64,000 nucleotides of DNA, from contig NC_087263.1 of NCBI RefSeq assembly GCF_037042905.1, positions 6,572,001 through 6,636,000 of the forward strand, read 5' to 3'. A program made the translations under genes and the position numbers. Source of the stretch: Lytechinus pictus. Its lineage: Eukaryota. The notes below the pieces were generated by a model that saw only the letters and a list, made by a program, of their open reading frames with translations, had not been told where the DNA came from and made no database searches. Below, piece after piece: positions 4,648 to 50,126 of the stretch (the stretch's first letter is position 1; the number at the start of each line of letters is the position of its first letter).

Positions 4648-5946
4648 TTACTTATTGGCATTGTCAATAATGCTATCCTCGTTCTTGGTACTTATTTTGA
4701 ATCGCTTGAAATCGAATTTCCATCTATTCAGTCCCAAGAATTGGCGAAAATTCCTACTAAAATGGACGTTTGTAGCAGCGTAAATGAAAGGATTCAAAGT
4801 GGAGTTACACCAAAGTAAATTACTGACAGTTTCCCACACACGGTCAGACACACATTCAAAGCCACAGATAGAAAACACTACACTGGTTATGTTATATGGT
4901 AGGTAGCAGATAGTGTAACAACCGACAAGTACTGTAAGAACGAGGGCAGCTCTGCGATGCCTCACTAAAGTTTTGTTATCCTTCTTACTAGGCCAATTGT
5001 TATTTTCTGATTCAGGATTGGGATCCTGCTGCCGAGCTTGGGCAACACTGGGATCTTCTTTCCAGCAGCATTTGGAACGCTTGGTCTCTAAAGCTGGGTC
5101 CAATGAAGATTCAATTCCTTCAAGCTGCTCCGTTGCTCCTTCGGATGATGTGCTTCTTGGTCCGCTTTGTTGTCGGTTTTGTGTAGATTCTTGCTCTATT
5201 CTTGTATTCTGAAATCGCGTTGTCGAGGCGCCATACGAGAGCATATCTGGGTTGATCCTATTTCCGACGAAACCTTTCGAGCGCCGTTTTATGTAAACAA
5301 ACACACCTACGTAAACCACCACCAGTATGGCGAATGGTAAAATGAACTCCAAAAGGTTTACTACAATTGTAGCAGATAAGTGTGTAAGAAACTCCATTTC
5401 ACATTCTTCATCATAGTTCACGTTGTGTTCCCCTGATATGGAACTCCAAGTGAATGCCAATATGCTATATACAGTTATCAATCCGATCCAAAGAGACACG
5501 ACGGTGTAGGTCGTTCTTTTATGACCACGGTTCCTGATGTATTTCACCCCCTTGGTCAAAAGGCAGTAGCGGTCCCAACTGATTAACAGCATAGTCATGA
5601 TCGATACCATGCTTAGGGTGTGATCAATGATGCACCATAGTTTGCAGAAGACCTCTCCGAATGGCCAGTAGTCTAAGATAACCCATGCCAAATTGACGCT
5701 CATTATGACTGCACCAACTAGAAAGTCCGAAATGGCCATATTCAGAATGTATATATTAGCAACGGTTATTCTTATTTTCGGATCGCGAAAATAAGCAAGT
5801 ACCACGAAGATATTCCCGATAACAGTAATTAAAGCAATTGCTGTCAAGATGAGAGGCACAGACCAAGTTGTTGAAAATGGATACTCGTCCAGAGAACCGC
5901 TGGTCGTCGTATCCTCATACTTATCAAAATCCGATGTATTAGACAT
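4648..5946 (-). CDS. Class A aminergic GPCR, histamine H3/H4-like, copy A1 (intronless CDS, ~432 aa from first ATG)
   Basis: Seven hydrophobic segments. Motifs: GN (TM1), NMAISD (TM2), CKLWCIID with D3.32, SWDRY, ECL2 CEMEF, EFILPF (E5.46/P5.50), CYLPY, LLWCNSTLNPFIY. The ORF track starts at a non-ATG codon (5967); the first ATG is at 5946 (MSNTSDF, with an N-glycosylation sequon). Confidence 0.93.
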   Translation of the reverse strand: MSNTSDFDKYEDTTTSGSLDEYPFSTTWSVPLILTAIALITVIGNIFVVLAYFRDPKIRITVANIYILNMAISDFLVGAVIMSVNLAWVILDYWPFGEVFCKLWCIIDHTLSMVSIMTMLLISWDRYCLLTKGVKYIRNRGHKRTTYTVVSLWIGLITVYSILAFTWSSISGEHNVNYDEECEMEFLTHLSATIVVNLLEFILPFAILVVVYVGVFVYIKRRSKGFVGNRINPDMLSYGASTTRFQNTRIEQESTQNRQQSGPRSTSSEGATEQLEGIESSLDPALETKRSKCCWKEDPSVAQARQQDPNPESENNNWPSKKDNKTLVRHRRAALVLTVLVGCYTICYLPYNITSVVFSICGFECVSDRVWETVSNLLWCNSTLNPFIYAATNVHFSRNFRQFLGLNRWKFDFKRFKISTKNEDSIIDNANK

Positions 5947-7770
5947 ATTTGCAGCCAGTATGATCAAACGGAATCAGTAGTAGACAGTTCATGTAGTACT
6001 TGAAGGAATGTCTGCACGATCGTTATACCCTTATCTAATTATTTTGTATAAATTACGATCCTCTCGATCCGGTCACCAGCAAGAATTCCCAAAGCAAAAT
6101 GAAAATAAAGGAGTGTTCACTTGAATGAAGGAAAATGTATTTTGCTTGTTATAACTGAACAACACTTACAGAATTCCCAGCAGGTTTATGAACCTCGGTG
6201 CATCAGAACCAACACCATTCTCTATTCTTGTTGCATCAGCTCTCTTTCACTTTCACTGTTTACTTTTTAACTGCTAATAACAATCAAATTGAACGAAGTC
6301 AGTGACAACCATGACAAGGGCAAAAAAGGCATTGAGAGAGGCCAGAGTACTGGTTTTAATTAAAAAGCTTCGTTTGGCGTTCACGTAAAATGATTGGAAT
6401 ACAATCATGATACCGTCTCGTGATAATCTAAGAAAATGACATCTGTTACTCCAAAGCACAGCTTTTATATGCAATATGAGTGTTGCCCAGGAAACTGAGA
6501 TACTAGTTTCCACATCATCTACATCTTGCGTGATGATGATTCCTATTTAGGGAACAGCCTATCGTCAGATCGAAGCTATACTGTTGACCATGTTGATACT
6601 TGGTTGACTTGATCAATGTTGATTATGGTTCAATGATCCATCTACTTCCTAGCAGAAGGGGGATCCTGCTGTAATCACTCCCGACCCATAAACCAACGTG
6701 GACCTTATGGAGAGAAAGGGGGAAGAAAGTGTTGTTATGATATCACTTTTAATTTGCTCAGTGAAATCGATATGTTGAGCGGAAAGAAAAACCCGGAGCC
6801 ATTGTTTGTGATGTAATTGCGATGTACAAGTAGAATAGAAATGGGTTTCCATTTTCAAGAGAGTGTGTTTGTATTATATATTTCCTCTTTTCTTCCAATG
6901 CGAAAATACAGTGTAACAAAACTGATGTAATAAATGGTTGCGTTGGAAACAACATCTTAGTAAAGTTATAACTTAAATTATAACTTCAGGACTGGTTGTG
7001 GGGGAGGCACTGAAAGTAGTTTCTATGCTTTTTATTGAACGTGATGTTCAATAGCGCATTAACCATGTTAATTTGTTGGTTGTGGGCTTTCAAAAAGCAC
7101 TCAGGTCTGCATGTAAAAAGGTGATAAGTTAACGCACCTTACACATGGTTCATGAATATCATTTAAAAAAAAATCGCAGCCTCTTTCAAGTAGGATGGCT
7201 TTAATCCAACAATGATTTCTTTGTGTTATTAAATCAATTACATTATCAACACTTCACTTAGAGATCACTGAACACGGGCGTAAATATGGGGGATGGGGAT
7301 ATATCCCCACTTATCGGAGAGGGAAAATGGCATGTTGAATCATCTCCCCACTTTTCAAGACAGAAACTTTTTTTTCCGTATCAATTATGTTAATACGTGG
7401 ATTCATCTTTAAGACAATGACTGCGGTAAAAATTCTTGAATTTGCCCAATTTTGCAGTCTATAAACGCAAAATTTCTCATGCGGTCTCACGCTCTCGCGT
7501 TCAATGTATTCTTACAAGAATGTGGTCAAGGTAGATCCTTAGTTTAAGTTTATTGCAAAGTTCTTATAAGTTATCATGAGAGTATGTTTATAATAAACCC
7601 ATTTATGAATTGAATAATTCAAATGACTTTTAAATATACTGGTTACAATTTTGTTCATAAAACAATAAAAACGTACACTGGCGGGGGGGGGGGGCATATC
7701 CTGGTATCATTGTGAAAGCAGGATACTTTTAATCACAATTAACACAACAAACTAATGAGTATATCAATGT

Positions 7771-7950
7771 GGAAGTGCAGTGGCCGAGTGGTCTAAGGCG
7801 CCTGACTATACGTGGAAAGTCCTGGGTTCGTTCCCCGGCCACGGCACCTATGCCCGTGAAGACAGCATTAAAATTGACAATTCTCTTTTATCCTGCATTC
7901 AAATAAATGGAAATGCTTTACGCAATCTTGGTAATTCGGTGTGCACTTCT
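7771..7950 (+). mobile_element. tRNA-derived SINE remnant (duplicate of 1171-1350)
   Basis: Near-identical to 1171-1350. Confidence 0.7.
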
Positions 7951-9653
7951 TTAAAAATATGAATTTTGCTCGAAATTTTGAATGTTGCATCTTCTCCAAA
8001 TATTAACTATTATTATTTTCCCCCTTTCTGCAATTTTTTTCCTTAGGTTTTCATTTCCATCATTGTGCAAATCCCGCATTTTCGGAAGCTTAAATTATGG
8101 AATGTGATGGCCTTTGAATCATTTCATGAGGCACTGTAGTTTCCATAATCATGACCCTTTTTTTTAATATCCAGATCTAAAAAGGGGCATTGTAAGCAAT
8201 TTTTTTTAATCATAATACGTACCTGTCTCGCTAAAGAAACAATACAAGCGCAAAGCGCGAGCTGAAATATTTGTATATATTGACCCCAAACAGGGACATT
8301 TTAAGGACTATATTTTAGGAATCCATTAAGAGTATACATATTTCACCATAGTCGTCTAATGCGAGTGCCAAGCGTTTGCTGATTTTAGAATTACATCTGA
8401 TGTTAGAATTACATCTAAGCACAGGAATCAATTGTAGTCATTGTAATCATGATTGAGATACGCATCTCACTAATCAAATATTGCGACCGTGAAGCGCGAG
8501 CTGAAAATTTAGAAAAATTAAGACATGAAGAGTGGCATTTTAAGGATTGTTTGTAGGATCTCACGAATACCATACGTATTTCATTAATCAAACGATGCGA
8601 GCACGAAGTGCGAGCTAAAATTTCGTGTATATATTGACTCCAAAAAGATATATTTCAAAGACTAATTTTAAGGAATCCATTAAAAGTATACATATCTCAC
8701 CATAGTCATCTAATGCGAGTGCCAAGCGCTTTCTGATTTTGTTAGAATTACATCTAAACACATGAAGCACTTTTTGTAGTCATTATAATCATGATTATCA
8801 TACGCCTCTCACTAATCAAATATTGCGAGCGCGAGCTGAAAATTTAGGAAATTCAGACCTGAAGAGGGGCATTCTAAGGCTTGTTTGTAGGAATTCACTA
8901 AGGCCATACGTATTTTACTAACCAAATGATGCGAGCGCGGAGCGCGAGCCGAAATTTTTTGATATTCAGATCAGAAAATGGGACATATTAAGGACTGATT
9001 TGAGGAATTCATGAAGAGCAGACAAAAGATGTTAAACACACTCCAGGGTTAAACGTATCAGTTTTAATTGCAAAATTCATTATAGAATAATTGATCTTTT
9101 CACCCCGTCAGCAAAGTTTAGGTTCGAAAGTACAATCATCTATATACTACATGGTGTTTGCTCTGTTAGGTTCGCTTACCCCTGCATACAAGAAACAGTT
9201 GGTCTCTGTAAAAGGTCTTTGTGATTTTCAGAAATCAACGGGTGATGGATGAAGGGTATTCCACTACCTGCTATTCAACTTTTAAACTGGTTATTTGTTA
9301 GGAACCTGCACACCAAAAACCAAAATATTATACATATTTGCACTTATCTCCGACTACATTATCAGATGCAACTTTCCTCATGGGAAGTGGTTAGTACTTA
9401 TGCCTGGATTTCCATTGTATTCGCTGATTCTTATACATGTCATACCTATTTGCAACATTGATTTCCATTGCAGTCAAATCTAAGCAAAGTGCCAAGAGTA
9501 GCCACGATTTTGTGCACGTTCAATCAGAATTTACATGTCATTGCCCTTCATACGGGGCGCCGGCTTTTCAAAAATGCACGGTGTTCAAACATCTGCAGAC
9601 GAAATTCAGGACGTGAAAAAGGACAGAAAAATGAAACAGTTTTATTAGTGAAT

Positions 9654-9966
9654 TTATTTATTTATTTATTCATTAAAATATCTTTATACAGGATAACAGG
9701 CTCAGGTTAACTGTTTTTCAGCCTGGTCCTGTTAACATAAAATAACAATATATACATAATAGATAAAAGAGTAACTTGGGTAATGTACAGTAATGAGTGT
9801 ATTCAATAACATTTAAAATCAGAATTATCATTAATACAAAATTGTTTAGAGATAAAATACACTACCAGTCACAATTTCCAGACTCAGCACCACCTGCCTC
9901 AGCCAGAGAACAATAGAATCAGCATGATCAGTGGACCAAATCCATTGCTCTCCGGCCGAAAAAGGC
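9654..9966 (-). mobile_element. Copy-specific 313-bp insertion, probable non-LTR retroelement 3' end
   Basis: Absent at the homologous site (~3100). AAT duplicated at the flanks, (TAAA)n tail, and hairpin cagga..caggct...agcctg.tcctg. Confidence 0.75.
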
Positions 9967-10962
9967 AATAAATTACAAACTGAGTTTGCTTTTCGAAAGG
10001 TTCATGTAACATGAATAAAACATAATGCCGATCTTCACATAAGATGGCAATCATTCGGCTGATTTATCATTTGATTTGTTTCAGACTGTGTAGCCTTTTT
10101 GATCGCAATAAAAGAAGCATTGATTGATTGATTGATTGACAACGAATTTATTCATTCCAAAATTTCAACAAAGTTACAAAGTAAAGCAAAATATAATATA
10201 ACATTTTGAAATGAAATAGGAACCTTCTGGAAAGCAAAGCTTGTTATTGAAGGTTTCCTTCAATAAATAAGACTTAATGCAAAAAAACAATATATATGTA
10301 TAAAATACTAATCATATCGTTCTTGTTGAAGTTCAAAATAGATACAATAAACAAGTCATCATATCTTTCTTGTAAAAAATATATGTAAAAATTATATGTA
10401 AATCCTTGTTAAATGTTTCAGACTGTGTAGCCTTTTTGATCGCAATAAAAGAAGCATTATTTTTAGGTGTGAAGCAGGAGGAAGAGAAAACGAAGTTAGA
10501 AATATAAGTTATTTCTGTTCAAGTTCTATGTGAGTGACAGAGCTATACCATTCTATGGCTATGCATCTTAATATTCTAAAAGAAATGTATTACTCAAAGT
10601 ATAACTAGCAGGGGGGGGGGAAGCAAATCTTATCCAACATCTATCTGTGAGAGATTGAGCTGACCAAGTCCTAGAAACTGTACAAGGTCCAAGTGATTCA
10701 TAGGCACCTTTACCTTCTTTGCATAATTCGGGTCAGCGGCTTTCACAGCAGTTTGTTATTGCTGTTGTTGCCATTTTATACCTGACAGGGAAAGAGCAGA
10801 AAATGACACGAAACAGTATTCCCACTTCATAGCACGATTACTATCATATTAATGTTGCTCAAACTGTCACCTAGATACACCATTTATACAACTTTCCATT
10901 TTGTATGGTTTCTCTTCCAAAAGAAAATCAAAAATTATAAGAACAGAAAAATAACAACAGCA

Positions 10963-11280
10963 ATAATAATAATGATAATGATAATGAATATTAGGCATTT
11001 GTATAGCGCCATCTTTCTAGAAATAATATATTTCGAGGCGCGTTGTTTTTATTTTTATCATCATTAATATTACCCCGGCTTTAGCTCGAGGTGCCTTTCA
11101 GCGCTCGTGCATTCAAGGAATTAAACCTGCCGGGTACCCATTCACCTCACCTGGGTCGAGTGCAACACAGTGTGGATACATTTCTTGCTGAAGGAAAACA
11201 CGCCATGGCTAGGATTCGAACAAAAGACCCTCTGCTTGAAAGGTGAGAGTCAGAACCACTAGACCACAACGCACCCACAC
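10963..11280 (-). mobile_element. tRNA-derived CORE-like SINE (duplicate of 4112-4428)
   Basis: Near-identical to the A1-unit copy. Confidence 0.8.
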
Positions 11281-11498
11281 GCAATAATACCGACTGATAG
11301 ACAGACAAAGTTGGGTTTACATAAGATCTTTGAACTAAGTACAGAACATGTCTCTTGCACGCCGAAGAAGTTGGCCAGTTCTCGGTGTTGGTTTGCTGAT
11401 CAGTCTGACTGATATGAGTCCTCAAATTTGACTAAGGAAATCAAACAAGAAAAACAAGCATTTCTTTCTCTCATTTCGAATCTCGAGTTATCATAGCG

Positions 11499-12815
11499 TT
11501 ACTTATTGGCATTGTCAATAATGCTATCCTCGTTCTTGGTACTTATTTTGAATCGCTTGAAATCGAATTTCCATCTATTCAGTCCCAAGAATTGGCGAAA
11601 ATTCCTCCTAAAATGGACGTTTGTAGCAGCGTAAATGAAAGGATTCAAAGTGGAGTTACACCAAAGTAAATTACTGACAGTTTCCCACACACGGTCAGAC
11701 ACACATTCAAAGCCACAGATAGAGAACACTACACTGGTTATGTTATATGGTAGGTAGCAGATAGTGAAACAACCGACAAGTACTGTAAGAACGAGGGCAG
11801 CTCTGCGATGCCTCACTAAAGTTTTGTTAACCTTCTTACTAGGCCAATTGTTATTTTCTGATTCAGGACTAGGATCCTGCTGCCGAGCTTGGGCAACACT
11901 TGGATCTTCTTTCCAGCAGCATTTGGAATGCTTGGTCTCTAAAGCTGGATCCAATGAAGATTCAATTCCTCCAAGCTGCATATAATTAGGTGTTGCTCCT
12001 TCGGATGATGTGCTTCTAGGTCCGCTTTGTTGTCGGTCTTGTGTAGATTTGTGCTCCATTCTTGTATTCTTAAATCGCGTTGTCGAGGCGTCATACGACA
12101 GCATATCTGGATTGATTCTATTTCCGACAAAACCTTTCGAGCGACGTTTTATGTTAACAAACACACCTACGTAAACCACCACCAGTATGGCGAATGGTAA
12201 AATGAACTCCAAAAGGTTTACTACAATTGTAGCAGATAGGTGTGTTAGAAACTCCATTTCACATTCTTCATCATAGTTCACGTTGTGTTCCCCTGTTATG
12301 GAACTCCAAGTGAATGCCAATATGCTATATACAGTTATCAATCCAATCCAAAGAGACACGACGGTGTAGGTCGTTCTTTTATGACCACGGTTCTTGATGT
12401 ATTTCGCCCCCTTGGTCAAAAGGCAGTAGCGGTCCCAACTGATTAACAGCATAGTCATAATCGATACCATGCTTAGGGTATGATCAAGGATGCACCATAG
12501 TTTGCAGAAGACCTCTCCGAATGGCCAGTAGTCTAGGATAACCCATGCCAAATTGACGCTCATTATGACTGCACCAACTAGAAAGTCCGAAATGGCAATA
12601 TTCAGAATGTATAAATTAGCAACGGTTATTCTTATTTTCGGATCGCGAAAATAAGCAAGAACCACAAAGAGATTCCCGATAACAGTAATTAAAGAAATTG
12701 CTGTCAAGATGAGAGGCACAGACCAAGTTGTTGAAAATTGATATTCGTCCAGAGAACCGCTGGTCGTCGTATCCTCATGCTTATACATCATATCAAAATC
12801 CGATGTATTAGACAT
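11499..12815 (-). CDS. Class A aminergic GPCR, histamine H3/H4-like, copy A2
   Basis: Close paralog of A1 with the same motifs and small in-frame indels in the N-terminus and ICL3. First ATG at 12815. Confidence 0.93.
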   Translation of the reverse strand: MSNTSDFDMMYKHEDTTTSGSLDEYQFSTTWSVPLILTAISLITVIGNLFVVLAYFRDPKIRITVANLYILNIAISDFLVGAVIMSVNLAWVILDYWPFGEVFCKLWCILDHTLSMVSIMTMLLISWDRYCLLTKGAKYIKNRGHKRTTYTVVSLWIGLITVYSILAFTWSSITGEHNVNYDEECEMEFLTHLSATIVVNLLEFILPFAILVVVYVGVFVNIKRRSKGFVGNRINPDMLSYDASTTRFKNTRMEHKSTQDRQQSGPRSTSSEGATPNYMQLGGIESSLDPALETKHSKCCWKEDPSVAQARQQDPSPESENNNWPSKKVNKTLVRHRRAALVLTVLVGCFTICYLPYNITSVVFSICGFECVSDRVWETVSNLLWCNSTLNPFIYAATNVHFRRNFRQFLGLNRWKFDFKRFKISTKNEDSIIDNANK

Positions 12816-15327
12816 ATTTGCAGCCAGTATGATCAAACGGAATCGGTAGTAGACAGTTAGATGTAGTACTTGTAGGAAATTCTGCACGATCGTTATACCC
12901 TTGTTTAATTATTTTGTATAAATTACGATCCTCTTGATCCGGTCACCAGCAAGAATGCCCAAAGCAAAATGAAACTAAAGGAATGTTCTCTTGAAAGAAG
13001 AAAAATGTATTTTGCTTGTAACAACTGAACAACACTTACATAATTCCCAGCAGGTTTATGAACCTCGGCGCATCAGAATCAACACCATTCTCTGTTCTTG
13101 TTGCATCAGCTCACTTTCTCTAACGCTGTTTACTTTTTTGCCAGCTAATCAATTACATTCATCAAATTGAACGAAGTCAATGACAACCATGACAACGGCA
13201 AGGGCAAAAAAGGCATAGAGAGAGGCAAGAGCACTGATTTGATTAAAAAAAGCTCCTTTTGGCGTTCACGTAAAATTATTGGAATACAATCATGATACCG
13301 TCTCGAGATAATCTAAGAAAATGACATCTGTTACTCCACATCACAGCTTTATATTCAATATGAGTGTTGCCCAGGAAAGATACTAGTTTCCACATCATCT
13401 ACATCTTGCGTGATGATGATTCCTATTTAGGGAACAGCCTGTCGTCAGATCGAAGCTATACTGTTGACACTTGATTGACTTGATTGTGGTTCAATGATCC
13501 ATCTACTTCCTAGCAGAAAGGGGATCCTGCTGTATCCACTCCCGACCCATAAACCAACGTGGACCTTCTGAAGAGAAAGGGGGAAGAAAGTCTTGTTATG
13601 ATATCACTGTTACTTTTCTCAGTGAAATTGATATGCTGAGCGAAAAAGAAAAAACTGGAGTCATTGTTTGTGATGTAATTGCGATGTACAAGAGAATATA
13701 ATTGGGTTTCCATTTTCAAGAGAGTGTGTTTGTATTATATATTTCCACTTTTCTTCTAATGTAAAAACGCATTGTAACAAAACTAATATAATGAAAGGTT
13801 GCGTTGGAAACAAAATCTTAGTAAAGTTATAACTTAAATTAGAACGTCAGGACTGGTTGTTGGGGTGGTACTGAAAGTAGTTTTTATGTTTTTTTATTGA
13901 ACGTGATGCTCAATAGCGCATTAACCATGTTAATTTGTTGGTTTCGGGTTTCCAAAAAGCACTTAGGTTAGCATGTAAAAAGGTGATAAGTTGACGCACC
14001 TTACATGTATATCATACAAAACAATCGCAGCCATTTTTAAGTAGGATGGCTTTGATCGAACAATGATTTTGTTTGCATTTTTATTAAATTAAGTACATTT
14101 AGAAATGACATCCTTAAGCTATCATTATCAAAACTTCACTTAGTGATCACTGAACACGGGCGTAAATGTCGGGGGATGGGGATATATCCCCCACTTATCG
14201 GAGAGGGGGAATGGCACGTAGAATCACCCCCCCCCCACTTTTCAAGACAGAAACTTTTTTTTCCGTATCAAATTATGTTAATACGCTGATTCATCTTTAA
14301 GACAATGACTGCAGTAAAAATGCTAATTTGCCTAATATTGCATTCTAAAAACGCAAAATTTCTCACGCGGTCGCTCCTCTCCCGCGTTTAATTTATTCTT
14401 ACAAAAAATGAGGTCAAGGCAGATCCTTAGTTTTATTTCATTGCAAAAGCTTTATCCGTTATCATGAGAGTATGTTTGTGATAAACCCATTTGTGAATCG
14501 AATAATTCAAATGACTTTTAAATATATATATTGGTTACAATTTTGATCATAAAGCAACAAAAACGTTCCTTAAATACACTGGCGGGGGGGGGGGGGGGCA
14601 TATCCTGGCATCATTGTGAAAGCAGGATACTTGCCCGGCCGCGGCACCTATGCCCGTGAGGATGCTCTTTTCCAATAAATGGAAATGCTGTGCACATTTT
14701 TGGTAACTCGGTGCGCACTTGTTTGAAAAAGAAATATGAATTTTCCTCGGAAAATTGAATGTTTTATCATCTCCAAATATAATCTTAACTATTATTATTT
14801 TCCCCCTTTCTGCAATCTTTTCCTTTTCATTTGCATCATAGTCCAGGAAAAATAAGTTTTGACCTCAGACAAATTTCAACAGAATTTTTTCACCGCAATG
14901 CATTTCCATGACCTCCCCAAAATTACATACTAAAATTCCAATAAAGTCTAAGTGGTGTAAAAACGCCCTGATATGCATATATCCAAAATGGCGGTCATTG
15001 TGAGAATATTTCTTGATTATTGGTAGTAGTACAAACACCGGTCTTATCATAGCACTTTAAAAAATTATGATTTAACCATAATAATATCGGGGTATTTCAA
15101 AGCTTGTTATTACCGGGAAGGGGGGGGGGGGGGAGGGGCAATATGGCCCCTTTGAGATCTACGCCATGGGTCGCCCGATTGCCTCAAATTTTTGCACAAG
15201 GGTCAAGAATGATATAATCTACACAGTTGTATAGCTAAATTAACGAAAGTCGTTTTATTTTGTTTTATTAATTAATTTACACTCTTAGTTCTTATTAGTC
15301 AAGCGGGGGCAAAGACTTTTCGAATCT

Positions 15328-15373
15328 CACGATGCGGCAAACTGAAATTGCAATTTCAGTTTGCCGCATCGTG
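15328..15373. repeat. Perfect 46-bp spacerless palindrome
   Basis: cacgatgcggcaaactgaaattg|caatttcagtttgccgcatcgtg. Confidence 0.95.
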
Positions 15374-21074: not shown

Positions 21075-21076
21075 GA

Positions 21077-22499: not shown

Positions 22500-22574
22500 C
22501 TTTTATCATTAAGCATTTCCCGCCATCTGCCATATCAAACGTACCTGAAGAACGAATTAAGAAATATAAAAATT

Positions 22575-22602
22575 GCTAATGGTTTTGTTTAATATTTTAC
22601 AG
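22575..22602 (+). promoter_or_regulatory. Putative 5'-UTR splice acceptor with branch point upstream of B1 (conserved at 28703 and 33064)
   Basis: gCTAATggttttgtttaatattttaCAG, identical in all three B units, about 440 nt before the ATG. Confidence 0.55.
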
Positions 22603-23040
22603 ATGCAACAAACTAGTTTCTTTGGAAATCTTGGATATCTATCATGAAAGTCTGCTCTGATTGACAGTGCCGATAATTGAGGACATTTCACGGTTGGTCA
22701 AATGGAACCAAATTGACAGGTTACCTTGTTTCAGAACAAATACGTATATAAGCAACCAGTCTTTATATGAAACTCTCTCGTCGATGTTTGACTATTAAGT
22801 GATACCTGAGCCATTGCCACAATTTGGAGACCAAATTTCTAACCGGACTCGTCAAAAGACAGAAAAAATCAGCGAGTGTACACTGACTTTGATATCGACT
22901 GAAACCCTGCAGATCGGCAGAACATTGAAAGCGTACATGTCCTGGCCTGACAGTGTATAAGCTATTGAGCTGTAAAGGGATAAAGTAAGACCAATATCGA
23001 TTGTTTAATCTTAAATCCCTGAATTGATAGCTTAATCGAA

Positions 23041-24339
23041 ATGGAAAACGCGAGTGATATTCATCCAAACACATCCAGCTGTTGCGAATATCAAGATTTG
23101 TATGATATAAGTGAACATCCCATGCATTCGATTGCGTGGCTAGCCACTGTCCCTTCGACTCTTTCGATAATAATCGCGGTCACTGTTGTGGGGAACGCGA
23201 TGGTGATTGTAGCTTACTTTCGGGACAAACGCATCAGGGATAATGTAGCGAACCTCTTCATCTTAAACCTTGCAATAACAGACTTTGTCGTCGGTGCTTT
23301 CATCATTTCCATTGACACTGCCTGGATCATCAATGACGTCTGGACCTATGGAGAAGTGTTCTGCAAAATCTGGCTAGACGTTGATTTCGTAGTCACCATG
23401 ATGTCTTTGCTCACCATGGTACTCATCAGCTGGGATCGTTACTGTCTCCTGACGATGGGGATGCGGTACAAAACATTCCAAACGAAAAAGCGTATCTGCG
23501 TGATCCTTGCCATTTCTTGGACAATTGTTAGCCTGATATACACATTCCTTGCTTTCGCATGGAGTCCCATTACCGGTGAATATAACGTAGATTATTCACA
23601 AAACTGTGAAATGGAGTTTACATACAACGTGGCCGCAACGCTCGTCATCAACATTTTCGAATTCTTCATTCCGTTTACTATCTTAATTATCCTTAACATT
23701 TCTGTGTACAGTAACATAAAACGTAGGTCTAGGGGTACCGTCGGCCAAAGCCCTTCAATACATACGTCGGCTAGGTCACCGAAGAAAAGCTTTGGACCTA
23801 GATCTCCAAGGAGGGTAAACTACCATCCTCCAGACGGTCTCTCTGGCCCACTAGCAGATTCTCATAGCCGCGGTGGTGATGCTGTTGCAGCAAATGTAAC
23901 TATCGAGTCTACTGACAACCGCGCAGATGGAGAAAATTCCTTCACAAGAAAACTGTCAAATGAAAGAGACTCGACTCCAAAGGAAGAAGGTCGAACATTC
24001 GCTAGGCATCGAAAAGCAGCATTCGTGTTAGCCATCCTTATCGGCTGTTTCCTTCTCTGTTGGTTACCCTACCAAGTAACAAGCGTAATGTATGCAGTCT
24101 GTGATACCGATTGCGTCTCCACTCGTTTGTGGGAGGTCACGAATTTACTTCTTTGGGGTAACTCAACCATTAATCCCTTTATCTATGCTGCTACTAATGT
24201 CCACTTTCGTCGGAACTTTAGGAAGTTTTTGTTGCTTGATCGTTGGGCTTGTGACTTTAAACATTGTAAAATGAAATGTCAAAATGCAAATCAGATTCAG
24301 GTTGCCACCGGAAGCCTTAATGACAGCACGGTAACCTAA
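23041..24339 (+). CDS. Class A aminergic GPCR, histamine H3/H4-like, copy B1 (432 aa)
   Basis: NLAITD, CKIWLDVD (D3.32), SWDRY, CEMEF, EFFIPF (E5.46), CWLPY, LWGNSTINPFIY; N-terminal NAS/NTS sequons. Confidence 0.95.
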   Translation: MENASDIHPNTSSCCEYQDLYDISEHPMHSIAWLATVPSTLSIIIAVTVVGNAMVIVAYFRDKRIRDNVANLFILNLAITDFVVGAFIISIDTAWIINDVWTYGEVFCKIWLDVDFVVTMMSLLTMVLISWDRYCLLTMGMRYKTFQTKKRICVILAISWTIVSLIYTFLAFAWSPITGEYNVDYSQNCEMEFTYNVAATLVINIFEFFIPFTILIILNISVYSNIKRRSRGTVGQSPSIHTSARSPKKSFGPRSPRRVNYHPPDGLSGPLADSHSRGGDAVAANVTIESTDNRADGENSFTRKLSNERDSTPKEEGRTFARHRKAAFVLAILIGCFLLCWLPYQVTSVMYAVCDTDCVSTRLWEVTNLLLWGNSTINPFIYAATNVHFRRNFRKFLLLDRWACDFKHCKMKCQNANQIQVATGSLNDSTVT

Positions 24340-24689
24340 TATCTGCAAACGATCGTCTTCGATCTAGAGAGTTTCCTTGGAAACATGTCGGAAGGCCCAG
24401 ACAAGAAACTTTTGTCAATACAATCAGACTACTGCACATCTAGCACCTATGACTTTGTCATGCCTGTAGCCGATATAAAAATAAAAATAAATGCATTGGC
24501 ACCAATGGCTCTTATACCGTCTATTAAGGCACAGGTTAACAATGATTTGACTTTATAAAAAGCAGCTGAAAGATCCCACTCATCACCTGTGTCCGTAATA
24601 TGTTATAACAATGAAGCCCAGACAAGAAATCGTACCCGAGAAGTGCTTCAAAAGGGAGAAATATAAATTGACCAGAAACACAATATTTA

Positions 24690-24860
24690 TTTCATGATGA
24701 TGACGAGAACAGCTTTTGTTTAGCGCCATTTATCTGGAAAAAACAACAACGACATTCAGAGGCGCCAGCTCCCCAATATGTGACACGTTATTCCAAAAGT
24801 TGCAGGAAGAGAAGGGTCTTTATTTCAGATTTGAAGGTCTCAATGTCGTCACATGTCATC
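24690..24860 (-). mobile_element. L2-like LINE 3' end (shorter copy at ~30818-30968)
   Basis: Minus strand encodes TCDDIETFKSEIKTLLF, typical of the L2 ORF2 C-terminus, followed by a ggcgcta..aaa tail and (ATC)n. Confidence 0.7.
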
Positions 24861-25090
24861 CTATACAATAACATTCGTTGTATATTGATATCCTCAGGAG
24901 ATTAAAGGCTTGGTCCCATTGCACTTACGGATGCAGAGAGGATGTAAAACAGAAAATAATATTGCCATCCGTTGGAAAACGTTATGTATCCGTTGTGTAC
25001 CCGTTGCATACGTGTTTCATACGCTCTGTATGCATCGAGCATCCGTCCACTGTGATTTCATTGTTCGCCCATTTTGCAGGTTTTTCCAAT

Positions 25091-29152: not shown

Positions 29153-30457
29153 ATGGAAAACACGAGAGATATTCATCATAACACCTCGAGCTGTTGCGAG
29201 GATCGAGATTTGTATGATATAAGTGTACATTCCGTGCATTCGATTGCGTGGCTAGCCACTGTCCCTTTGACTCTTTCGATAATTATCGCAGTCACTGTAG
29301 TGGGGAACGCGATGGTGATTGCAGCTTACTTTCGGGACAAACGCATCAGGAATAATGTAGCGAACCTCCTCATCTTAAACCTTGCAATAACAGACTTTGT
29401 CGTCGGTGCTTTCATCATTTCCTTCGACACTGCCTGGATCATCAAGGACGTCTGGACCTATGGAGAAGTGTTCTGCAAAATCTGGCTAGAAGTTGATTTC
29501 GTAGTCACCATGATGTCTTTGCTCACCATGGTACTCATCAGCTGGGATCGTTACTGTCTCCTGACGATGGGGATGCGGTACAAAACATTCCAAACGAAAA
29601 AGCGTATCTGCGTGATCCTTGCCATTTCTTGGACAATTGTTAGCCTGATATACACATTCCTTGCTTTCGCATGGAGTCCCATTACCGGTGAATATAACGT
29701 AGATTATTCACAAAACTGTGAAATGGAATTTGTATACAACCTGGTCGCAACGATCGTCATCAACATTTGCGGATTCTTCATTCCATTTACTATCTTAATT
29801 ATCCTTAACATTGCTGTGTACAGTAACATAAAACGAAGGTCTAGGGGTACCGTCGGCCAAAGCCCTTCAAGTTCAATAAATCCGTCGGCTAGGTCATCAA
29901 AGAGAAGCGTTGGGCCTCGATCTCCAAGGAGGGTAGACTACCGTCATCCCGACGGTCCATTTGGCCCAGTAGCAGATTCACCTAGCCGCGGTGGTGATGC
30001 TGCTGCAGCAAATGTAACTACCGAGACTACTGACAACCTCGCAGATGGAGAAAACCCCATCACAAAAAAACTGTCAAATGAAAGAGCCTCTACTTCAAAG
30101 AAAGCAAGTCGAACATTTGCCAAGCATCGAAAAGCAGCCTTCGTGTTAGCCATCCTTATCGGCTGTTTCCTGCTCTGTTGGCTACCTTACCAAGTAACAA
30201 GCGTAATGTATGCAGTCTGTGATACCGATTGCGTCTCCACTCGTTTGTGGGAGGTCACGAATTTACTTCTTTGGTGTAACTCAACCATTAATCCCTTTAT
30301 CTATGCTGCTACTAATGTCCACTTTCGTCGGAACTTTAGGAAGTTTTTGTTGCTTGATCGTTGGGCTTGTAACTTTAAAAATTGTAAAATGAAATGTCAA
30401 AATGCAAATCAGATTCAGGTTGCCACTGGAAGCCTTAATGGCAGCACGGTTACCTAA
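29153..30457 (+). CDS. Class A aminergic GPCR, histamine H3/H4-like, copy B2 (434 aa)
   Basis: Paralog of B1 with intact ORF; GFFIPF (G5.46). Confidence 0.95.
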   Translation: MENTRDIHHNTSSCCEDRDLYDISVHSVHSIAWLATVPLTLSIIIAVTVVGNAMVIAAYFRDKRIRNNVANLLILNLAITDFVVGAFIISFDTAWIIKDVWTYGEVFCKIWLEVDFVVTMMSLLTMVLISWDRYCLLTMGMRYKTFQTKKRICVILAISWTIVSLIYTFLAFAWSPITGEYNVDYSQNCEMEFVYNLVATIVINICGFFIPFTILIILNIAVYSNIKRRSRGTVGQSPSSSINPSARSSKRSVGPRSPRRVDYRHPDGPFGPVADSPSRGGDAAAANVTTETTDNLADGENPITKKLSNERASTSKKASRTFAKHRKAAFVLAILIGCFLLCWLPYQVTSVMYAVCDTDCVSTRLWEVTNLLLWCNSTINPFIYAATNVHFRRNFRKFLLLDRWACNFKNCKMKCQNANQIQVATGSLNGSTVT

Positions 30458-30968
30458 TATCTGCAAAACGACCGTCTTCAATCTAGAGAGTTTCCTTGCA
30501 AACATGTCGGAAGGCCCAGACACGAAACTTTTGTCAATACAATTATCTGACTGCTGCACATGTTGCGCCTATGGCCCTGTCATGCCTGTGGTGGATATAA
30601 CATTTTAAAAATGAATGCTTTGGCACCAATGGCTCTTATAACGTGTATTAAGGCACAGGTAAACAATGATTTGACTTTTAAAAAATGAAAGCAGCTGAAA
30701 GATCCTACTTATCACCTGTGTCCGTGATATGTTAACAATGAAGCTAAGACAAGAAATTGTACCCGAAAAGTCCTTCAAAAGGGTGAAATGTAAATTGACC
30801 GGAAACACAATTTTTATTTCATGATGATGATGAGAACAGCATTTGTATAGCGCCATTTATCTGCAAAAAAACAACAACGACATTCAGAGGCGCCAGCTCT
30901 CCAATATGTCACACGTTATTACAAAAGTTGCAGGAAAAGAAGGGTCTTTATTTTAGATTTAAAGGTCC

Positions 30969-31939
30969 TACTGCACTTACGGATGTAGAGAGGATGTAAA
31001 ACAGGAAATAATCTTGCCATCCGTTGGAAAACGTTATGTATCCGCTGTGTACCCTTTGCATACGTGTTTCATACGCTCTTTATGCATCGAGCATCCGTCC
31101 ACTGTGATTTCATTGTTCGCACATTTAGCAGTTTTGTCAATTGTCTGGAGCGGATGAAAACGGATGGAGCCACCTCGAAATTTGGCTTGTCCGCTGTATC
31201 CGTTATGAATACGTTTTGTGTCCGTTGGCCAGTGGGACCAGGCCTTTAAAGGCCTGGTCCCACTGCAATTACGCATGCAAACCGTATGTAAAGCGTAAAA
31301 AATCTTGCCATCCGTTGGAAAACGCTATGCATCCGATGTGTACTCATTGCAAACGTGTTACATACGCTCTACCCATCGAGCATCCACCCACTGTGATTTT
31401 ATCTGCGTACAAAGTTTTGAGCTGCACAAAACTTTTAGAACGGATGAACGTTCGCCGTGTACGACGTAAATCCGCAACATTACGAGAAACAAACATCCAA
31501 TCTCCGTTATCATCCGTTAAACGTCCGTTGTTTCTCTCTGTATCTTTTGGGAATCCTTGAAGCTCATATTCACTGCAGCGGAACACCGGAAAGAGGGAGG
31601 AAAGATAAGGTACATTGAGCACGGAAATAGAGAGGATGTTAAAGCGTATGCATCTCGTATAAAGTATTCAAACCTCTCCGGTAACACCTTCGGAGGAGCT
31701 ATCCACTTTCATCACCTTTCATCCGCTAGGCATCCGATAAACATCCGTTTAACATCCCCGCTTAATTATACCAACGTCCGTTATTTTCCGTTATGTTTTC
31801 GGCAAATTTTCGATAATTTTGTCAATTTCTGGAGCGGATAGAAACGGATGAAGCCCCCCCCCCCCCACCCCCTCTCTCTGAAAGTTTGCTCGTCCGATGT
31901 GTCCTTTATTGATACGGTCTGCATCCACCGACGAGGCCT
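30969..31939. mobile_element. Same Harbinger-like element pair in the B2 unit (junction TTAA at 31246-31249)
   Basis: gtgggaccaggcct-ttaa-aggcctggtcccac junction; lacks the B1 nested inserts. Confidence 0.7.
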
Positions 31940-32412
31940 TTAGTAAATAATGGTTTTTCAGTATATCCGAGGAGATATTTTATCTTGAAAGTGTCTGCAC
32001 GTATCCATGTATGCATTTTTTTCTTCTTTGTGTATTTTTTTTAATCAATAAGAACAATAATAAATTCAGCATGAATGAATGTTCAGTATTATTTTTTCCA
32101 ATATGATGTTTGTAATGTTAACATGCGCCTTTAATCAATAATAATAATGTCATATTGTACCCATGAGAGCCACTTCAGTTCCAAAAACTGTTCTCCCTGC
32201 GGGCCCTGCTTAACATGATTACCCGGCAAAGATCAAAATTGCACTACTCAAAAGAAGAAAATGATCGCTCTCTGAAATTGATCCGCCATCAAGGTCCTCG
32301 AATATGGAATTCTTTGAATGTCAATGTTACATCATGTAGCTTCTTAAACTGTTTTAAACGAAAGAATGTAAGTCAAGCTTGCTATCCTCTTATAGTCATT
32401 AATTTGTCCTCA

Positions 32413-32751
32413 CATGGGCGGAAATCCCAGAAAGGCCAGGGGACGCGTCCCCCTACCAAAAATAGTAGGGGGACACAATATCAAATGTCCCCCTACTATT
32501 TTTGGTCTGTTATGATGGAGAAAACTACATCATTCACAATCGAAAAAATACCTGTATTTTGGACTAAATGACCTTATATTTTGAATGAAAACCTTGGCTT
32601 TTTTGTTTTGTTTTTATTTTTGCTTGTCAATTTTATTTGGGTTAAAATGACCTTACATTTTGGGTGCTAACCTTTTTTTTTTTTTTTGGCTTGTCAAATT
32701 TTCCAGCCCCTGGTTCCCCTTTCCTTTGGCATAGATTTCCCGGCGCCCATG
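32413..32751. mobile_element. hAT-type MITE of the same family as 22144-22499 (5'-eroded counterpart at ~28068-28390)
   Basis: CATGGGCGGAAATC...GATTTCCCGGCGCCCATG. It interrupts the LINE fragment that is uninterrupted at ~36310. Confidence 0.75.
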
Positions 32752-33507
32752 TTCCTTCAATGTATGTACATGCATATTTGATATTCCTACCCCCCCTCCC
32801 CCCATCCCTGTGTGAATGACTTTGTGATGTGAATTTATTTTCTTTTTTGTTATTACCAATCTCCGGGCGCCAAGCTAGAAAACGACAAGACCATTTTAAT
32901 AAATTTGTAGAATGATTCAGCCTCTATTTGATCTAACTGACCTCCAGTTAATGAGGCCGGCGATTACCTATCATTATCATTAAGCATTTTCTGCCATATC
33001 AAACGTACCGGAATAAGGAATTTACAAAAAAAAAATGCTAATGGTTTTGTTTAATATTTTACAGATGCAACGAACCAGGTTCTATGGAAATCTTGGATAT
33101 CTATCATGAGTCTGTTTTGATTGACAGTTCCGATACTTGAGGAAATTTCAGTTTGTCAAACGGAAACAAATTGGTGGGTTCAGAACAAATACGTATAAGT
33201 AACCAGTCTTTATATGAAACTCTCTCGTCGATGTTTGACTATTAAGTGATACCTGAGCCATTACCACAAATTGGAGACCAAATTTCAAACCGGACTCGTC
33301 ATAAGACAGAATACGTCGCGAGTGTATACTGACTTTGATATCGACTGAAACCCTGCAGATCGACAGAACGTTGAAAGCGTACATGTCCTGCCCTGACTAG
33401 TGTTCCATACCGGACAAAAACAAATAAGCTTTTAAGAACTAAAATGATTAAGTAAGTCCAGTATCAATTATTCAATCTTAAATCCCTGATTTGATGGCTT
33501 AATCGAA

Positions 33508-34812
33508 ATGGAAAACACGAGTGATACTCATCGAAACACCTCCAGCTGCTGCGAAGATCAAGATTTGTACGATATAAGTGAACATCCCATGCATTCGATT
33601 GCATGGCTCGCCACTGTCCCTTTGACTCTTTCGATAATAATCGCGGTCACTGTAGTGGGGAACGCGATGGTGATTACAGCTTACTTTTGGGACAAACGCA
33701 TCAGGAATAATGTAGCGAACCTCTTCATCTTAAACCTTGCAATAACAGACTTTGTCGTCGGTGCTTTCATCATTTCGATTAACACTGCCTGGATCATGAA
33801 GGACGTCTGGGCCTATGGAGAAGTGTTCTGCAAAATCTGGCTAGACGTCGATTTCGTAGTTACCATGATGTCTACGCTCACCATGGTACTCATCAGCTGG
33901 GACCGTTACTGTCTCCTGACGATGGGGATGCGGTATAAAACATTCCAAACGAAAAAGCGTATTTGCGTGATCCTTGCCATTTCTTGGACAATTCATATTC
34001 TGATATACACATTCCTTGCTTTTGCATGGAGTCCCATTACCGGTGAATATAACGTAGATTATTCACAAAACTGTGAAATGGAGTTTACATACAACCTGGT
34101 CGCAACGATCGTCATCAACATTTTTGGATTCTTCATTCCATTTGCTATCTTAATTATCCTTAACATTGCTGTGTACAGTAACATAAAACGAAGGTCCAGG
34201 GGTACCGTCGGCCAAAGCACTTCAAGTTCAATAAATACGTCGGCTAGGTCACCAAAGAAAAGCTTTGGGCCTAGATCTCCAAGGAGGATAAACTACCGTC
34301 ATCCCGACGGTCCATCTGGCCCAGTAGCAGTCTCGCCTAGCCGCGGTGGTGATGCTACTGCAGCAAATGTAACTACCGAGCTTACTGACAACCGCGCAGG
34401 TGGAGAAAACCCCCTCACAAGAGAACTGTCAAATGAAAGAACCTCTACTTCAAAGAAAGCAGGTCGAACATTCGCTAGGCATCGAAAAGCAGCCTTCGTG
34501 TTAGCAATCCTTATCGGCTGTTTCATTCTCTGTTGGTTACCCTACCAAGTAACAAGCGTCATGTATGCAGTTTGTGATACCGATTGCGTCTCCACTCGTT
34601 TGTGGGAGGTCGCGAATTTACTTCTTTGGTGTAACTCAACCATTAATCCCTTTATCTATGCTGCTACTAATGTCCACTTTCGTCGGAACTTTAGGAAGTT
34701 TTTGTTGCTTGATCGTTGGGCTTGTGACTTTAAAAATTGTAAAATGAAATGTCAAAATGCAAATCAGATTCAGGTTGCCACTGGAAGCCTTAATGACAGC
34801 ACGGTTACCTAA
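33508..34812 (+). CDS. Class A aminergic GPCR, histamine H3/H4-like, copy B3 (434 aa)
   Basis: Paralog of B1/B2 with intact ORF; GFFIPF (G5.46). Confidence 0.95.
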   Translation: MENTSDTHRNTSSCCEDQDLYDISEHPMHSIAWLATVPLTLSIIIAVTVVGNAMVITAYFWDKRIRNNVANLFILNLAITDFVVGAFIISINTAWIMKDVWAYGEVFCKIWLDVDFVVTMMSTLTMVLISWDRYCLLTMGMRYKTFQTKKRICVILAISWTIHILIYTFLAFAWSPITGEYNVDYSQNCEMEFTYNLVATIVINIFGFFIPFAILIILNIAVYSNIKRRSRGTVGQSTSSSINTSARSPKKSFGPRSPRRINYRHPDGPSGPVAVSPSRGGDATAANVTTELTDNRAGGENPLTRELSNERTSTSKKAGRTFARHRKAAFVLAILIGCFILCWLPYQVTSVMYAVCDTDCVSTRLWEVANLLLWCNSTINPFIYAATNVHFRRNFRKFLLLDRWACDFKNCKMKCQNANQIQVATGSLNDSTVT

Positions 34813-35104
34813 TATCTGCAAACGAGCGTCTTCGATCTAGAGAGTTTCCTTGGAAACATGTCGGAAGGCCCAGACAAGAAACTTTTGTCAATACAATCAG
34901 ACTTCTGCACATCTTGCGCTTATGACCCTGTCATGCCTGTGGTGGATATAAAAAAATGAATTGGCACCAATGGCTCTTATAACGTCTATTAAGGCACAGG
35001 TAAACAATGATTTGACTTTAAAAAAAAAGCAGCTGAAAGATCCCATTTATCACCTGTGTCCGTGATATGTTATAACAATAAAGCCCAGAAAATAAATCGT
35101 ACCC

Positions 35105-35865
35105 GAAATTTGGCTTGTCCGCTGTATCCGTTATGAATAAGTTTTGTGTCCGTCGGCTAGTGGACAAGGCCTTTAAAGGCCTGGTCCAACTGCACTTACG
35201 CATGCAAACCGGATGTAAAGCGTGAAAAAAACTTGCCATCCGTTGGAAAACGCTATGCATCCGTTGTGTACTCATCGCAAACGTGTTACATACGCTCTAC
35301 CCATCGAGCATCCATCCACTGTGATTTCATCCGCGTACAGAGTTTTGAGCTGCACAAAACTTTTAGAACGGATGAACGTTCCGCCGTGTACGATGTAAAT
35401 CCACAAAACTACGAGAAACCAACGTCCCATCTCCGTTATCCGTTAAACGTCCGCTGTTTCTCTCTGCATCTTCTGGGAATCCTCGAAACTCATATTCACT
35501 GCAGCGGAACAACGGAAAGAGGGATGAGAGATAAGGTACATGGAACGTCTATATATCGTTAGTAGCGCGGAAATAGAGAGGATGTATGCATCTCGTCTAT
35601 AAAGTCTTTAAAACCCCCGGTAACGCCTTTGGAGCAGCCATCCACTTCCATCCCATTTCATCTGCTAGGCATCTGATGAACATCCGTTTAACATCCCGCT
35701 AAATACTACCGACGTCCGTTATTTAACGTTATGTTTTCGGCAAATTTTCGCTAATTTTGTCCATTTCTGGAGCGGATGAAAACGGTTGAAGCCCCCCCCC
35801 CCCGAAATTTTGCTTGTCTACTGTGACCCTTAGAGATACGTTCTGCATCCAGTGGGACGAGGCCT
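35105..35865. mobile_element. Same Harbinger-like element pair in the B3 unit (first element mostly deleted)
   Basis: Junction at 35173-35176; second element 35177-35865. Confidence 0.7.
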
Positions 35866-46928: not shown

Positions 46929-46981
46929 TATAAATACAACCCTGGTGTCTCCCGAAGCTGCACGTGCTGGCAGAGGTAAGT
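46929..46981 (+). promoter_or_regulatory. Candidate TATA box and short leader-exon donor for GPCR copy C
   Basis: TATAAATA at 46929, followed by GAG|GTAAGT at 46975/46976, 1.8 kb upstream of the ATG. Sequence-only inference. Confidence 0.35.
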
Positions 46982-48812: not shown

Positions 48813-50126
48813 ATGGTTTTTAGTAGTTCAAGTGGCTCGGCAGTAGCGGGAAACGGGAGTGCCATCTCCGAGTCTGTGGACAGTTACTCCTCCGATTACA
48901 ACGACAGCCTTTCTTCGGACCACACTTTCGATTACTCATCAAGCTATTTCTCTTCGTACACCTACGAGTATCCATTCTCTTCAACGTGGCTTGCCATTGT
49001 TCCAATGGTTGTTTCCATCTTCAGTGTCGTGACGTTCATTGGAAACCTTTTTGTCATCCTTGCTTACATCCGGGACAAACGCATACGGGCGAGCGTGGCA
49101 AACATCTTCATCCTTAACCTCGCAATGACTGATATCATAGTAGGAGCTCTGGTCTGGACGATCAACCTATCATGGCTCATAAAGGACCAATGGATACTTG
49201 GCGAGATCTTCTGCAAGCTTTGGTTGGTGTTAGACTACTCGGTTGTCCTCATATCCGTCTGGACAATGGTCCTGATAAGCTGGGACCGCTACTGTCTTCT
49301 GACGATGGGTATGAGGTACCAGACTTTCCAGACCAAGAAAAGAATTGGTGTCATACTTGGCTGCGTTTGGGCAGCTACATTCATCTGGTACTTCATCCTT
49401 GCGTTTGCATGGGATTCTATAGCAGGAGAAAACAAGATAGATTATACTGACAACTGTGAGATGGGGTTTGCGGTTAGTTTCTCGGGGACAATGCTCCAGA
49501 ACGTGATCTCATTCTTCATACCGTTTTCAGTTCTGATATTTTTCAATCTTGCGGTGTATGCTAACATCAAACGTAGATCGAGGGGTGTCGTAGGGCAGAG
49601 TCCTCCCTCAAACAAATCCAACCAAGCAACACAATCTACCGGGGTCAGTCAAGAAGGAATGGGCTCATCGGAAGGTCAAGGAAACAGTCCTCTCAGGGAT
49701 ATGAACGTTGCCGAGTGTTCAGAACCAGGCCCATCAACTTCTAGTTTTCGTACAACTGTCCAACATATCCGGCTCCCAGAAGACAAACCAGTCAGTGGTC
49801 GAATCGCAGTTGTGCCGAATACAGAAGAAAGAAGTTTTGCAAAGCATCGCAGAGCTGCGATCGTCCTGAGCATCCTCGTGGGTTGTTTTTTGATCTGTTG
49901 GTTACCTAGCCAAGTGTCCACTTTCATGTACGCAATCTGTGGAACCGACTGCGTCACCGACTTAACATGGGAAGTCACAAGTTCATTTGTTTGGAGTAAC
50001 TCGACTATAAATCCCTTTATATATGCAGCTACAAATAAGCTCTTTCGTCGTAATTTCGTGCACAGTTTATGCCTTGATCGATGGAGCTGTGACTTGAAAC
50101 GGTGCAAAGTCAAGCGCAAACGTTAA
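48813..50126 (+). CDS. Class A aminergic GPCR, histamine H3/H4-like, diverged copy C (~437 aa)
   Basis: First ATG at 48813 in good Kozak context (aaccATGg). NLAMTD, CKLWLVLDY, SWDRY, CEMGF, SFFIPF, CWLPS, VWSNSTINPFIY. Shares SWDRYCLLT, IKRRSxG and NPFIYAATN with the A and B copies. Confidence 0.93.
   Translation: MVFSSSSGSAVAGNGSAISESVDSYSSDYNDSLSSDHTFDYSSSYFSSYTYEYPFSSTWLAIVPMVVSIFSVVTFIGNLFVILAYIRDKRIRASVANIFILNLAMTDIIVGALVWTINLSWLIKDQWILGEIFCKLWLVLDYSVVLISVWTMVLISWDRYCLLTMGMRYQTFQTKKRIGVILGCVWAATFIWYFILAFAWDSIAGENKIDYTDNCEMGFAVSFSGTMLQNVISFFIPFSVLIFFNLAVYANIKRRSRGVVGQSPPSNKSNQATQSTGVSQEGMGSSEGQGNSPLRDMNVAECSEPGPSTSSFRTTVQHIRLPEDKPVSGRIAVVPNTEERSFAKHRRAAIVLSILVGCFLICWLPSQVSTFMYAICGTDCVTDLTWEVTSSFVWSNSTINPFIYAATNKLFRRNFVHSLCLDRWSCDLKRCKVKRKR

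Follow-up and report, generated by a model that had tools for sequence, protein, structure and literature searches.

We report here on a cluster of six receptor genes, lying between positions 4648 and 50126 of a 64,000 nucleotide stretch of the Lytechinus pictus genome (assembly GCF_037042905.1, contig NC_087263.1, positions 6,572,001 to 6,636,000 of the forward strand), hereafter called the window. The six genes probably encode functional aminergic GPCRs (G-protein-coupled receptors) of class A, which, as judged from their sequences, would belong to a family of echinoderms and hemichordates, inside the H3-type clade and sister to the canonical histamine H3 receptors, carry pockets specific for each subtype and form an array with two layers. 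The first layer would be an old cluster of the subtypes A, D, B and C, with E lying farther off, older than the split between Lytechinus and Strongylocentrotus; the second would stem from segments carrying A and B that were triplicated recently within the Lytechinus lineage. A preliminary description of the window had proposed that an H3-like receptor was independently expanded here into a repertoire tuned to different amines, resembling TAARs (trace amine-associated receptors). Its sequence observations hold true and err, if at all, on the side of understatement; the functional proposal, an array of TAAR-like chemosensors for amines whose pocket diversifies, found no support in the tests run.

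Each of the six receptors announced in that description was found as an uninterrupted open reading frame (ORF), running from ATG to stop and 432 to 438 amino acids (aa) long, and all six match the Pfam 7tm_1 domain (PF00001) over the full profile, with E values from 1e-48 to 1e-52. A1 (4648-5946; 432 aa, single exon, 7tm_1 E value 1.6e-49) and its paralogue A2 (11499-12815; 438 aa) lie on the reverse strand. B1 (23041-24339; 432 aa), its paralogues B2 (29153-30457) and B3 (33508-34812), both of 434 aa, and the single-copy subtype C (48813-50126; 437 aa) lie on the forward strand. The coding sequences (CDSs) had been described as intronless, and public gene models for B1 (P0001, 432 aa, 100% identity) and C (P0024, 437 aa) have indeed the same length as the ORFs, so that the CDSs are single-exon. 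The proposed division into three subfamilies is borne out by protein identities of 94% between A1 and A2, 88-90% among the B copies, 42% between A and B and 51% between B and C. The closest other species, by protein matches, is L. variegatus.

The array extends upstream, past the start of the window, where a genome search and examination of the flanks added three genes missed by the preliminary description. A3 (C19:6570026-6571324, reverse strand) is 98% identical to A1; D (C19:6564226-6565563, reverse strand) carries Glu3.32 and Y6.48, keeps E5.46 and W7.43, and its third intracellular loop is long; E (C19:6517116-6518339, forward strand) features the most H3R-like pocket (D-Y..C, E5.46, W6.48, Y6.51). 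At least nine genes are found over about 105 kb, and the genome contains at least 31 intact family members, with paralogues on C1, C7, C8, C13, C15, C17, C18, C19 and C21. Asp3.32 is near-universal among aminergic receptors; the Glu found in D is shared with its orthologue in Strongylocentrotus purpuratus (P0032), the two being identical at 34 out of 34 pocket sites. The gene model of the latter extends over 14.9 kb, hinting at an exon farther upstream.

By sequence, human H3R is the top match in PDB for A (1e-41, against 1.6e-40 for M4), for B (2e-51, against 1.7e-42 for M4) and for C (1.9e-48, against 1e-37 for M5), H4R being far weaker against B1 (4.5e-32). A phylogenetic tree was built with IQ-TREE under the LG+C20 model from 85 sequences and 380 columns. 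References were taken from the 150 best representatives obtained when 1.8 billion proteins were searched exhaustively with HMMER, with clades named by cluster look-up, and paralogues from this genome were added; a word-indexed protein search did not reach vertebrate H3R. The tree was rooted on this genome's own genes best matching 5-HT1A/beta-adrenergic, D2 and 5-HT1 receptors. An H3-type clade of 70 sequences was recovered with 100/100 support, and muscarinic, H1-like and 5-HT/dopamine-like receptors fall outside it, the muscarinic clade being the nearest and the H1-like clade the next one. Inside, canonical H3 receptors (100/99) are sister to a group formed by lophotrochozoan H3-like receptors and the ambulacrarian family (100/100), to which the genes described here belong. 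E5.46 is common across the H3-type clade and absent from muscarinic and H1-like genes. Subtype C clusters with paralogues from other chromosomes. An apparent split of the family from H3R, seen in a midpoint-rooted FastTree, was undone by true outgroup rooting and IQ-TREE.

The canonical H3 clade includes pike and newt H3R, amphioxus, two hemichordates, a nemertean and a rotifer, and other hemichordate sequences group with the echinoderm family: since hemichordates carry both kinds, the ambulacrarian family is a separate lineage. The union of the family with deuterostome canonical H3Rs was rejected by the approximately unbiased (AU) test (difference in log likelihood 57, p = 0.008), for a grouping chosen post hoc with the tree already known. 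Membership in the canonical H3/H4 orthogroup was thus discarded in favor of a sister family restricted to Ambulacraria. When the genome was queried with a canonical H3-type protein from a hemichordate, the matches were an H1-like gene, followed by muscarinic genes and by B1; no orthologue of canonical H3R turned up, though one split by introns could escape such a search. In the tree, the grouping with H3/H4 receptors expected in the preliminary description was recovered at the level of the superfamily. The label "H3-like" holds at this level only, and not as membership in the canonical orthogroup; the nearest characterised relative is H3R. An independent expansion of the H3-type lineage, to at least 31 genes, is right in outline, but concerns a sister lineage and not an H3/H4 orthologue. 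Many members of the family bear automatic names such as "muscarinic M3/M5-like" or "H1-like". According to the title of a published work (Ravhe et al. 2021), H3-H4 arose in early vertebrates; the H3-type lineage seems here to be of greater age and complexity, with a canonical orthogroup reaching hemichordates and some protostomes, and an expanded sister in Ambulacraria.

Pocket residues were numbered from the anchors N1.50, D2.50, R3.50, W4.50, P5.50, P6.50 and P7.50, and each residue listed in the preliminary description was reproduced, together with the differences between subtypes to which it had drawn attention. D3.32 and W7.43 are present in all six receptors, and Y6.51 in five, with S in C. 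In the order A1/A2/B1/B2/B3/C, position 3.33 is H/H/F/F/F/Y, 3.36 is S/S/T/T/T/V, 5.46 is E/E/E/G/G/S and 7.40 is N/N/L/L/L/S. The second extracellular loop (ECL2) contains C-E-M-E-F, or C-E-M-G-F in gene C. The complete A1 pocket reads D3.32, H3.33, S3.36, E5.46, Y6.48, Y6.51, S7.39, N7.40 and W7.43, and that of A2 differs only by F6.44; C combines Y3.33, V3.36, S5.46, S6.51 and S7.40. Two features had gone unnoticed: the replacement of the toggle W6.48 by Y in subfamily A and the loss, in all six receptors, of the F7.39 of H3R. W6.48 is kept in B and C, and the aminergic combination of Asp3.32 with an aromatic residue at 6.48/6.51 is present. DRY and NPxxY occur in all six receptors, as befits class-A GPCRs; the CWxP motif reads CYLP in A and CWLP in the other two subfamilies.

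Compared with vertebrate HRH3 (PDB 8YUU, 7F61), the urchin family shares D3.32, an aromatic 3.33, W7.43, E/D7.36, the ECL2 motif C-x-x-E-F, E5.46 in A, B1, D and E, and the common 100/100 clade. It differs in the loss of F7.39 and W7.40, in the change of C3.36 to S, T or V, found in all six receptors, in the loss of E5.46 in B2, B3 and C, in Y6.48 in A, and in having single-exon CDSs and 31 or more copies instead of one or two. In human H3R, the amine of histamine binds E206(5.46) and the imidazole touches D114(3.32), W402(7.43), C118(3.36) and F398(7.39), the last of which stacks on the ring; the contact set also includes Y6.51 and L7.42, and Gi activation is lost when E206, D114 or W402 is mutated to alanine (PMC11187927). 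A1, A2 and B1 retain these three essential residues, E5.46 being replaced by G in B2 and B3 and by S in C.

For the receptors with Asp3.32, Glu5.46 and Trp7.43 (A1-A3, B1 and E), the ligand would be a cationic amine or diamine, histamine being the leading candidate, and a ligand of the same kind is predicted for D, with its Glu3.32, E5.46 and W7.43. B2, B3 and C, lacking E5.46, are not expected to bind histamine in the H3R mode and probably recognize another ligand. Signalling through heterotrimeric G proteins is suggested by the intact DRY, CWxP/CYxP and NPxxY motifs. Since each pocket is kept between species, every subtype probably has its own ligand preference.

The same residues could be read in the opposite way, namely that amine recognition was abandoned for a non-amine ligand, the H3-like residues being an inherited scaffold. 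F7.39 and W7.40 are indeed lost family-wide, and the toggle W6.48 became Y in subfamily A and gene D; among the other pocket positions, D3.32 is missing in 4 of the 31 family members and E5.46 in 12, but 27 and 19, respectively, keep them, and W7.43 is found in 29. Two pocket acids have been kept over a time counted in hundreds of millions of years, as a cationic ligand would select, and we regard this loss of amine binding as very improbable, compared with receptors which still recognize amines.

The arrangement of the genes in other species indicates the age of the two layers. S. purpuratus has one A and one D orthologue, adjacent, sharing a strand and with some 6 kb between them, and on the opposite strand, at a distance of no more than about 30 kb, a B orthologue; L. 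pictus shows the same arrangement. A Diadema protein likewise carries the pocket of the A type (D-H at 3.32-3.33, E5.46, C-Y-L-P-Y). Because of the neighboring A, D and B genes of S. purpuratus and the pocket found in Diadema, the cluster of subtypes must be old. As revealed by self-BLASTN, two tandem A units of about 6.6-6.9 kb, 92% identical with their non-coding flanks, span positions 3099-14632, and a third one, 97% identical, begins upstream and crosses the start of the window. Three tandem B units, about 90% identical with their flanks, span positions 22526-35108, with start-to-start spacings of 6.1 and 4.35 kb. Being 90-97% identical, flanks included, the units point to recent segmental duplications of A and B. 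In this respect the evolutionary reading of the preliminary description needs correction: the subtype cluster is old, and recent copying concerns A and B alone.

L. variegatus carries three tandem B genes at one locus (L039), each nearest to one L. pictus copy. B1 is the 1:1 counterpart of LvBa, and is also the copy nearest to the lone B gene of S. purpuratus; B2 corresponds to LvBc and B3 to LvBb, although strong support in the tree is found only for the pairing of B2 with LvBc (98/96). Counterparts agree in their residue at 5.46, which is E in B1 and LvBa and G in the two other pairs. Since the S. purpuratus B gene has E5.46, the G is the derived state, and the substitution originated once and was retained in four genes across the two species. 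E-type and G-type B copies are distinguished by fixed differences at six amino acids, 5.46 included, two of the six lying in the fifth transmembrane helix (TM5).

Rates of substitution tell that the receptor genes are under purifying selection, with dN/dS (omega) values between 0.15 and 0.6. Pairwise values are 0.31-0.42 among the A copies (0.34-0.42, with dS 0.06-0.08, for A2 against A1) and 0.44-0.62 among the B copies; between Lytechinus orthologues they are 0.30 for B1/LvBa, 0.33 for B2/LvBc and 0.28 for B3/LvBb, and against S. purpuratus 0.15-0.28, with dS near saturation. Paralogue omega values thus exceed those of orthologues, as they would if the recent copies, A1-A3 and B1-B3, were redundant by-products of duplication, some drifting to loss, or if the A1/A3 pair were a haplotype artefact. 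Several observations would agree with such redundancy: the non-coding flanks are about as identical as the CDSs, A1 and A3 differ by about 2% in protein (dS 0.03), reads from B2 and B3 RNA are nearly nil, as detailed below, and at least one family pseudogene, with an internal TAG, is found elsewhere (C1:28815121). Yet every copy is an intact ORF with complete motifs, L. variegatus keeps an intact B trio with matching E/G/G residues and omega of about 0.3, and a self-alignment check found no N gaps within the window. Redundancy of the recent copies is accordingly judged quite unlikely, and their retention as working receptors is preferred.

A diversifying pocket was claimed in the preliminary description, and would be the mark of a TAAR-like chemosensory repertoire, displayed by outward-facing sensory cells, as in larvae or tube feet, each receptor detecting one dissolved amine, the histamine settlement cue among them. 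Within subtypes it is not borne out. Replacements between recent copies cluster in the N-terminus, the third intracellular loop and the C-tail; variable pocket sites are 1 out of 34 in A and 3 out of 34 in B, to be compared with 7 and 18, respectively, out of 176 other transmembrane sites (Fisher p = 1.0). The pocket shows no excess of replacements, an outcome that the description itself had named as contradicting its proposal, and each subtype's pocket is conserved between species. Stable 1:1 orthology of this kind, with conserved pockets, differs from the rapid birth and death of chemosensory genes.

Across the family the picture changes. The variability of the pocket relative to other transmembrane sites reaches a ratio of 0.98-1.0, against 0.78 in canonical H3, 0.62 in lophotrochozoan and 0.78 in muscarinic receptors; even so, non-pocket sites in the extracellular half of the helices vary more than those of the pocket. 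The latter is thus relaxed in comparison with single-ligand families, without being hypervariable, and is conserved inside each subtype; the lower constraint across subtypes fits different ligands. A chemosensory repertoire would account for this pattern, for the tandem, single-exon organization with at least 31 copies, and for the retention of E5.46G, which belongs to a set of no more than six replacements fixed between the B types. The lack of introns, which had been taken as a chemosensory mark, loses its weight, being common to all aminergic genes sampled in the genome: the 5-HT-, dopamine-, muscarinic- and H1-like genes retrieved here are also single ORFs.

The similarity with TAARs is one of analogy only: they are also aminergic-derived, mostly single-exon, organized in tandem clusters and endowed with subfamily-specific pocket residues, but of different origin. 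TAARs carry a fingerprint in TM7, NSxxNPxx[YH]xxx[YF]xWF. Sought as a regular expression, it was found in none of the nine array genes, and no TAAR occurs among the 60 best PDB matches listed for B1; TAAR identity was rejected on these grounds. Muscarinic and H1-type receptors are the next-nearest clades, and this genome's own muscarinic (L031-L033) and H1-like (L030) genes cluster elsewhere; muscarinic receptors have A5.46 and Y7.43. Known echinoderm chemoreceptor candidates belong to other families. The surreal-GPCRs and the starfish OR-like GPCRs are likewise echinoderm-specific expansions of the rhodopsin class, found in genomic clusters, but they comprise hundreds of genes, are not described as aminergic, and are expressed in tube feet and pedicellariae (PMC7042368, PMC5442662). 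The words "histamine" and "aminergic" are absent from the text of both papers. A literature search on echinoderm H3-type expansion, S. purpuratus Hrh3 and aminergic surreal-GPCRs or starfish ORs found no description of the family.

Some points weigh against functional receptors of an H3-type sister family. The tree sequences were picked for their resemblance to B1, and the group joined in the AU test was, as said, a post hoc choice. F7.39 and W7.40 are absent throughout the family, and because of their loss binding of histamine is uncertain even where E5.46 is present. The closeness of A1 and A3 may be an artefact of haplotype duplication. Three rRNA-depleted L. pictus RNA runs, of which about 1.3 Gb each were sampled over the interval 29100-34900, leave B2 and B3 almost without reads (about 0-3) in tissues that are unspecified: B2 has essentially zero reads, and B3 a few per run, sense-oriented if the library is of the standard stranded type. 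Run searches for B2/B3 and for C yielded no run labelled as RNA.

As the tissue labels of the three runs are coded, the negative RNA result is a weak one. Scant RNA is consistent with sparse sensory expression or with unsampled stages, and very low levels in bulk RNA would be expected of chemoreceptors expressed in few cells; with B2 and B3 nearly readless in these runs, the TAAR-like chemosensory reading is nonetheless speculation. Most RNA reads of the interval fall on repeats between the genes and match only partially; many of them, with loose ends, were observed between B2 and B3, at 31040-31430 and 32010-32790, and look like transcripts of dispersed repeats rather than of local genes. An apparent joint going back 4351 nucleotides, seen in run X1, was discarded, since it reflects only the paralogy of the sequences downstream of B2 and B3, and X1 behaves as low-depth DNA.

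Dissolved histamine induces settlement in Holopneustes; in S. purpuratus histamine modulates competence, and thioperamide, an H3 antagonist, induces settlement (PMC3460732). Three receptor types were reported in the genome, only receptors 1 and 2 being clearly assigned to mammalian counterparts (PMC3460732), and H3-like mRNA was reported from early embryos (PMC12467107). As an echinoderm counterpart of the TAARs, the genes might form an independently evolved family of amine chemosensors, in which members with E5.46 would sense dissolved histamine, the settlement cue from algae, and those with G5.46 or S5.46 other waterborne amines; if true, this would also explain why thioperamide triggers settlement. 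We find such a family doubtful, and a TAAR-like repertoire equally so, for the reasons given above. An internal neuromodulatory or paracrine role is somewhat favored for the array, and is rated above a dedicated chemosensory one, which seems rather unlikely.

Whatever the role, the settlement pharmacology is now provided with a defined set of candidate receptors, in which the members keeping the histamine-binding acids are marked. The conserved E5.46G switch between near-identical paralogues represents a natural experiment on ligand recognition by H3-type receptors. L. pictus is, moreover, genetically tractable.

Elsewhere in the genome, some family members deserve mention. The paralogue at C1:28814500-28817000, 53% identical to B1, is interrupted by an internal TAG, has no intact ORF reaching 280 aa, and is probably a pseudogene. 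Near-identical pairs of paralogues, 0.1-2 Mb apart, are found at C1:6.05/6.17 Mb, C21:7.11/9.07 Mb and C21:7.65/8.54 Mb, and could be either very recent dispersed duplications or duplications of the assembly. Three divergent members have no Asp3.32, namely L023 (C7:23.26 Mb) and L034 (C8:5.45 Mb), both with S, and L038 (C15:22.6 Mb), with N. The DRY motif is degenerate in L023 (HRR) and L038 (FRL), and the three lineages may have abandoned classical amine binding or G-protein coupling.

Two further ORFs are worth noting. Near the array, a 334-aa ORF on the forward strand (C19:6560779-6561783) has a weak match to GIY-YIG (E value 0.003, under the Pfam cut-off) and perhaps represents part of a Penelope-like retroelement. 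Within the window, positions 56590-60894 of the reverse strand contain a highly repetitive ORF of about 1,400 aa, with a period of about 24 nucleotides and a strong GC skew, whose Thr/Pro-rich product has a mucin-like look.

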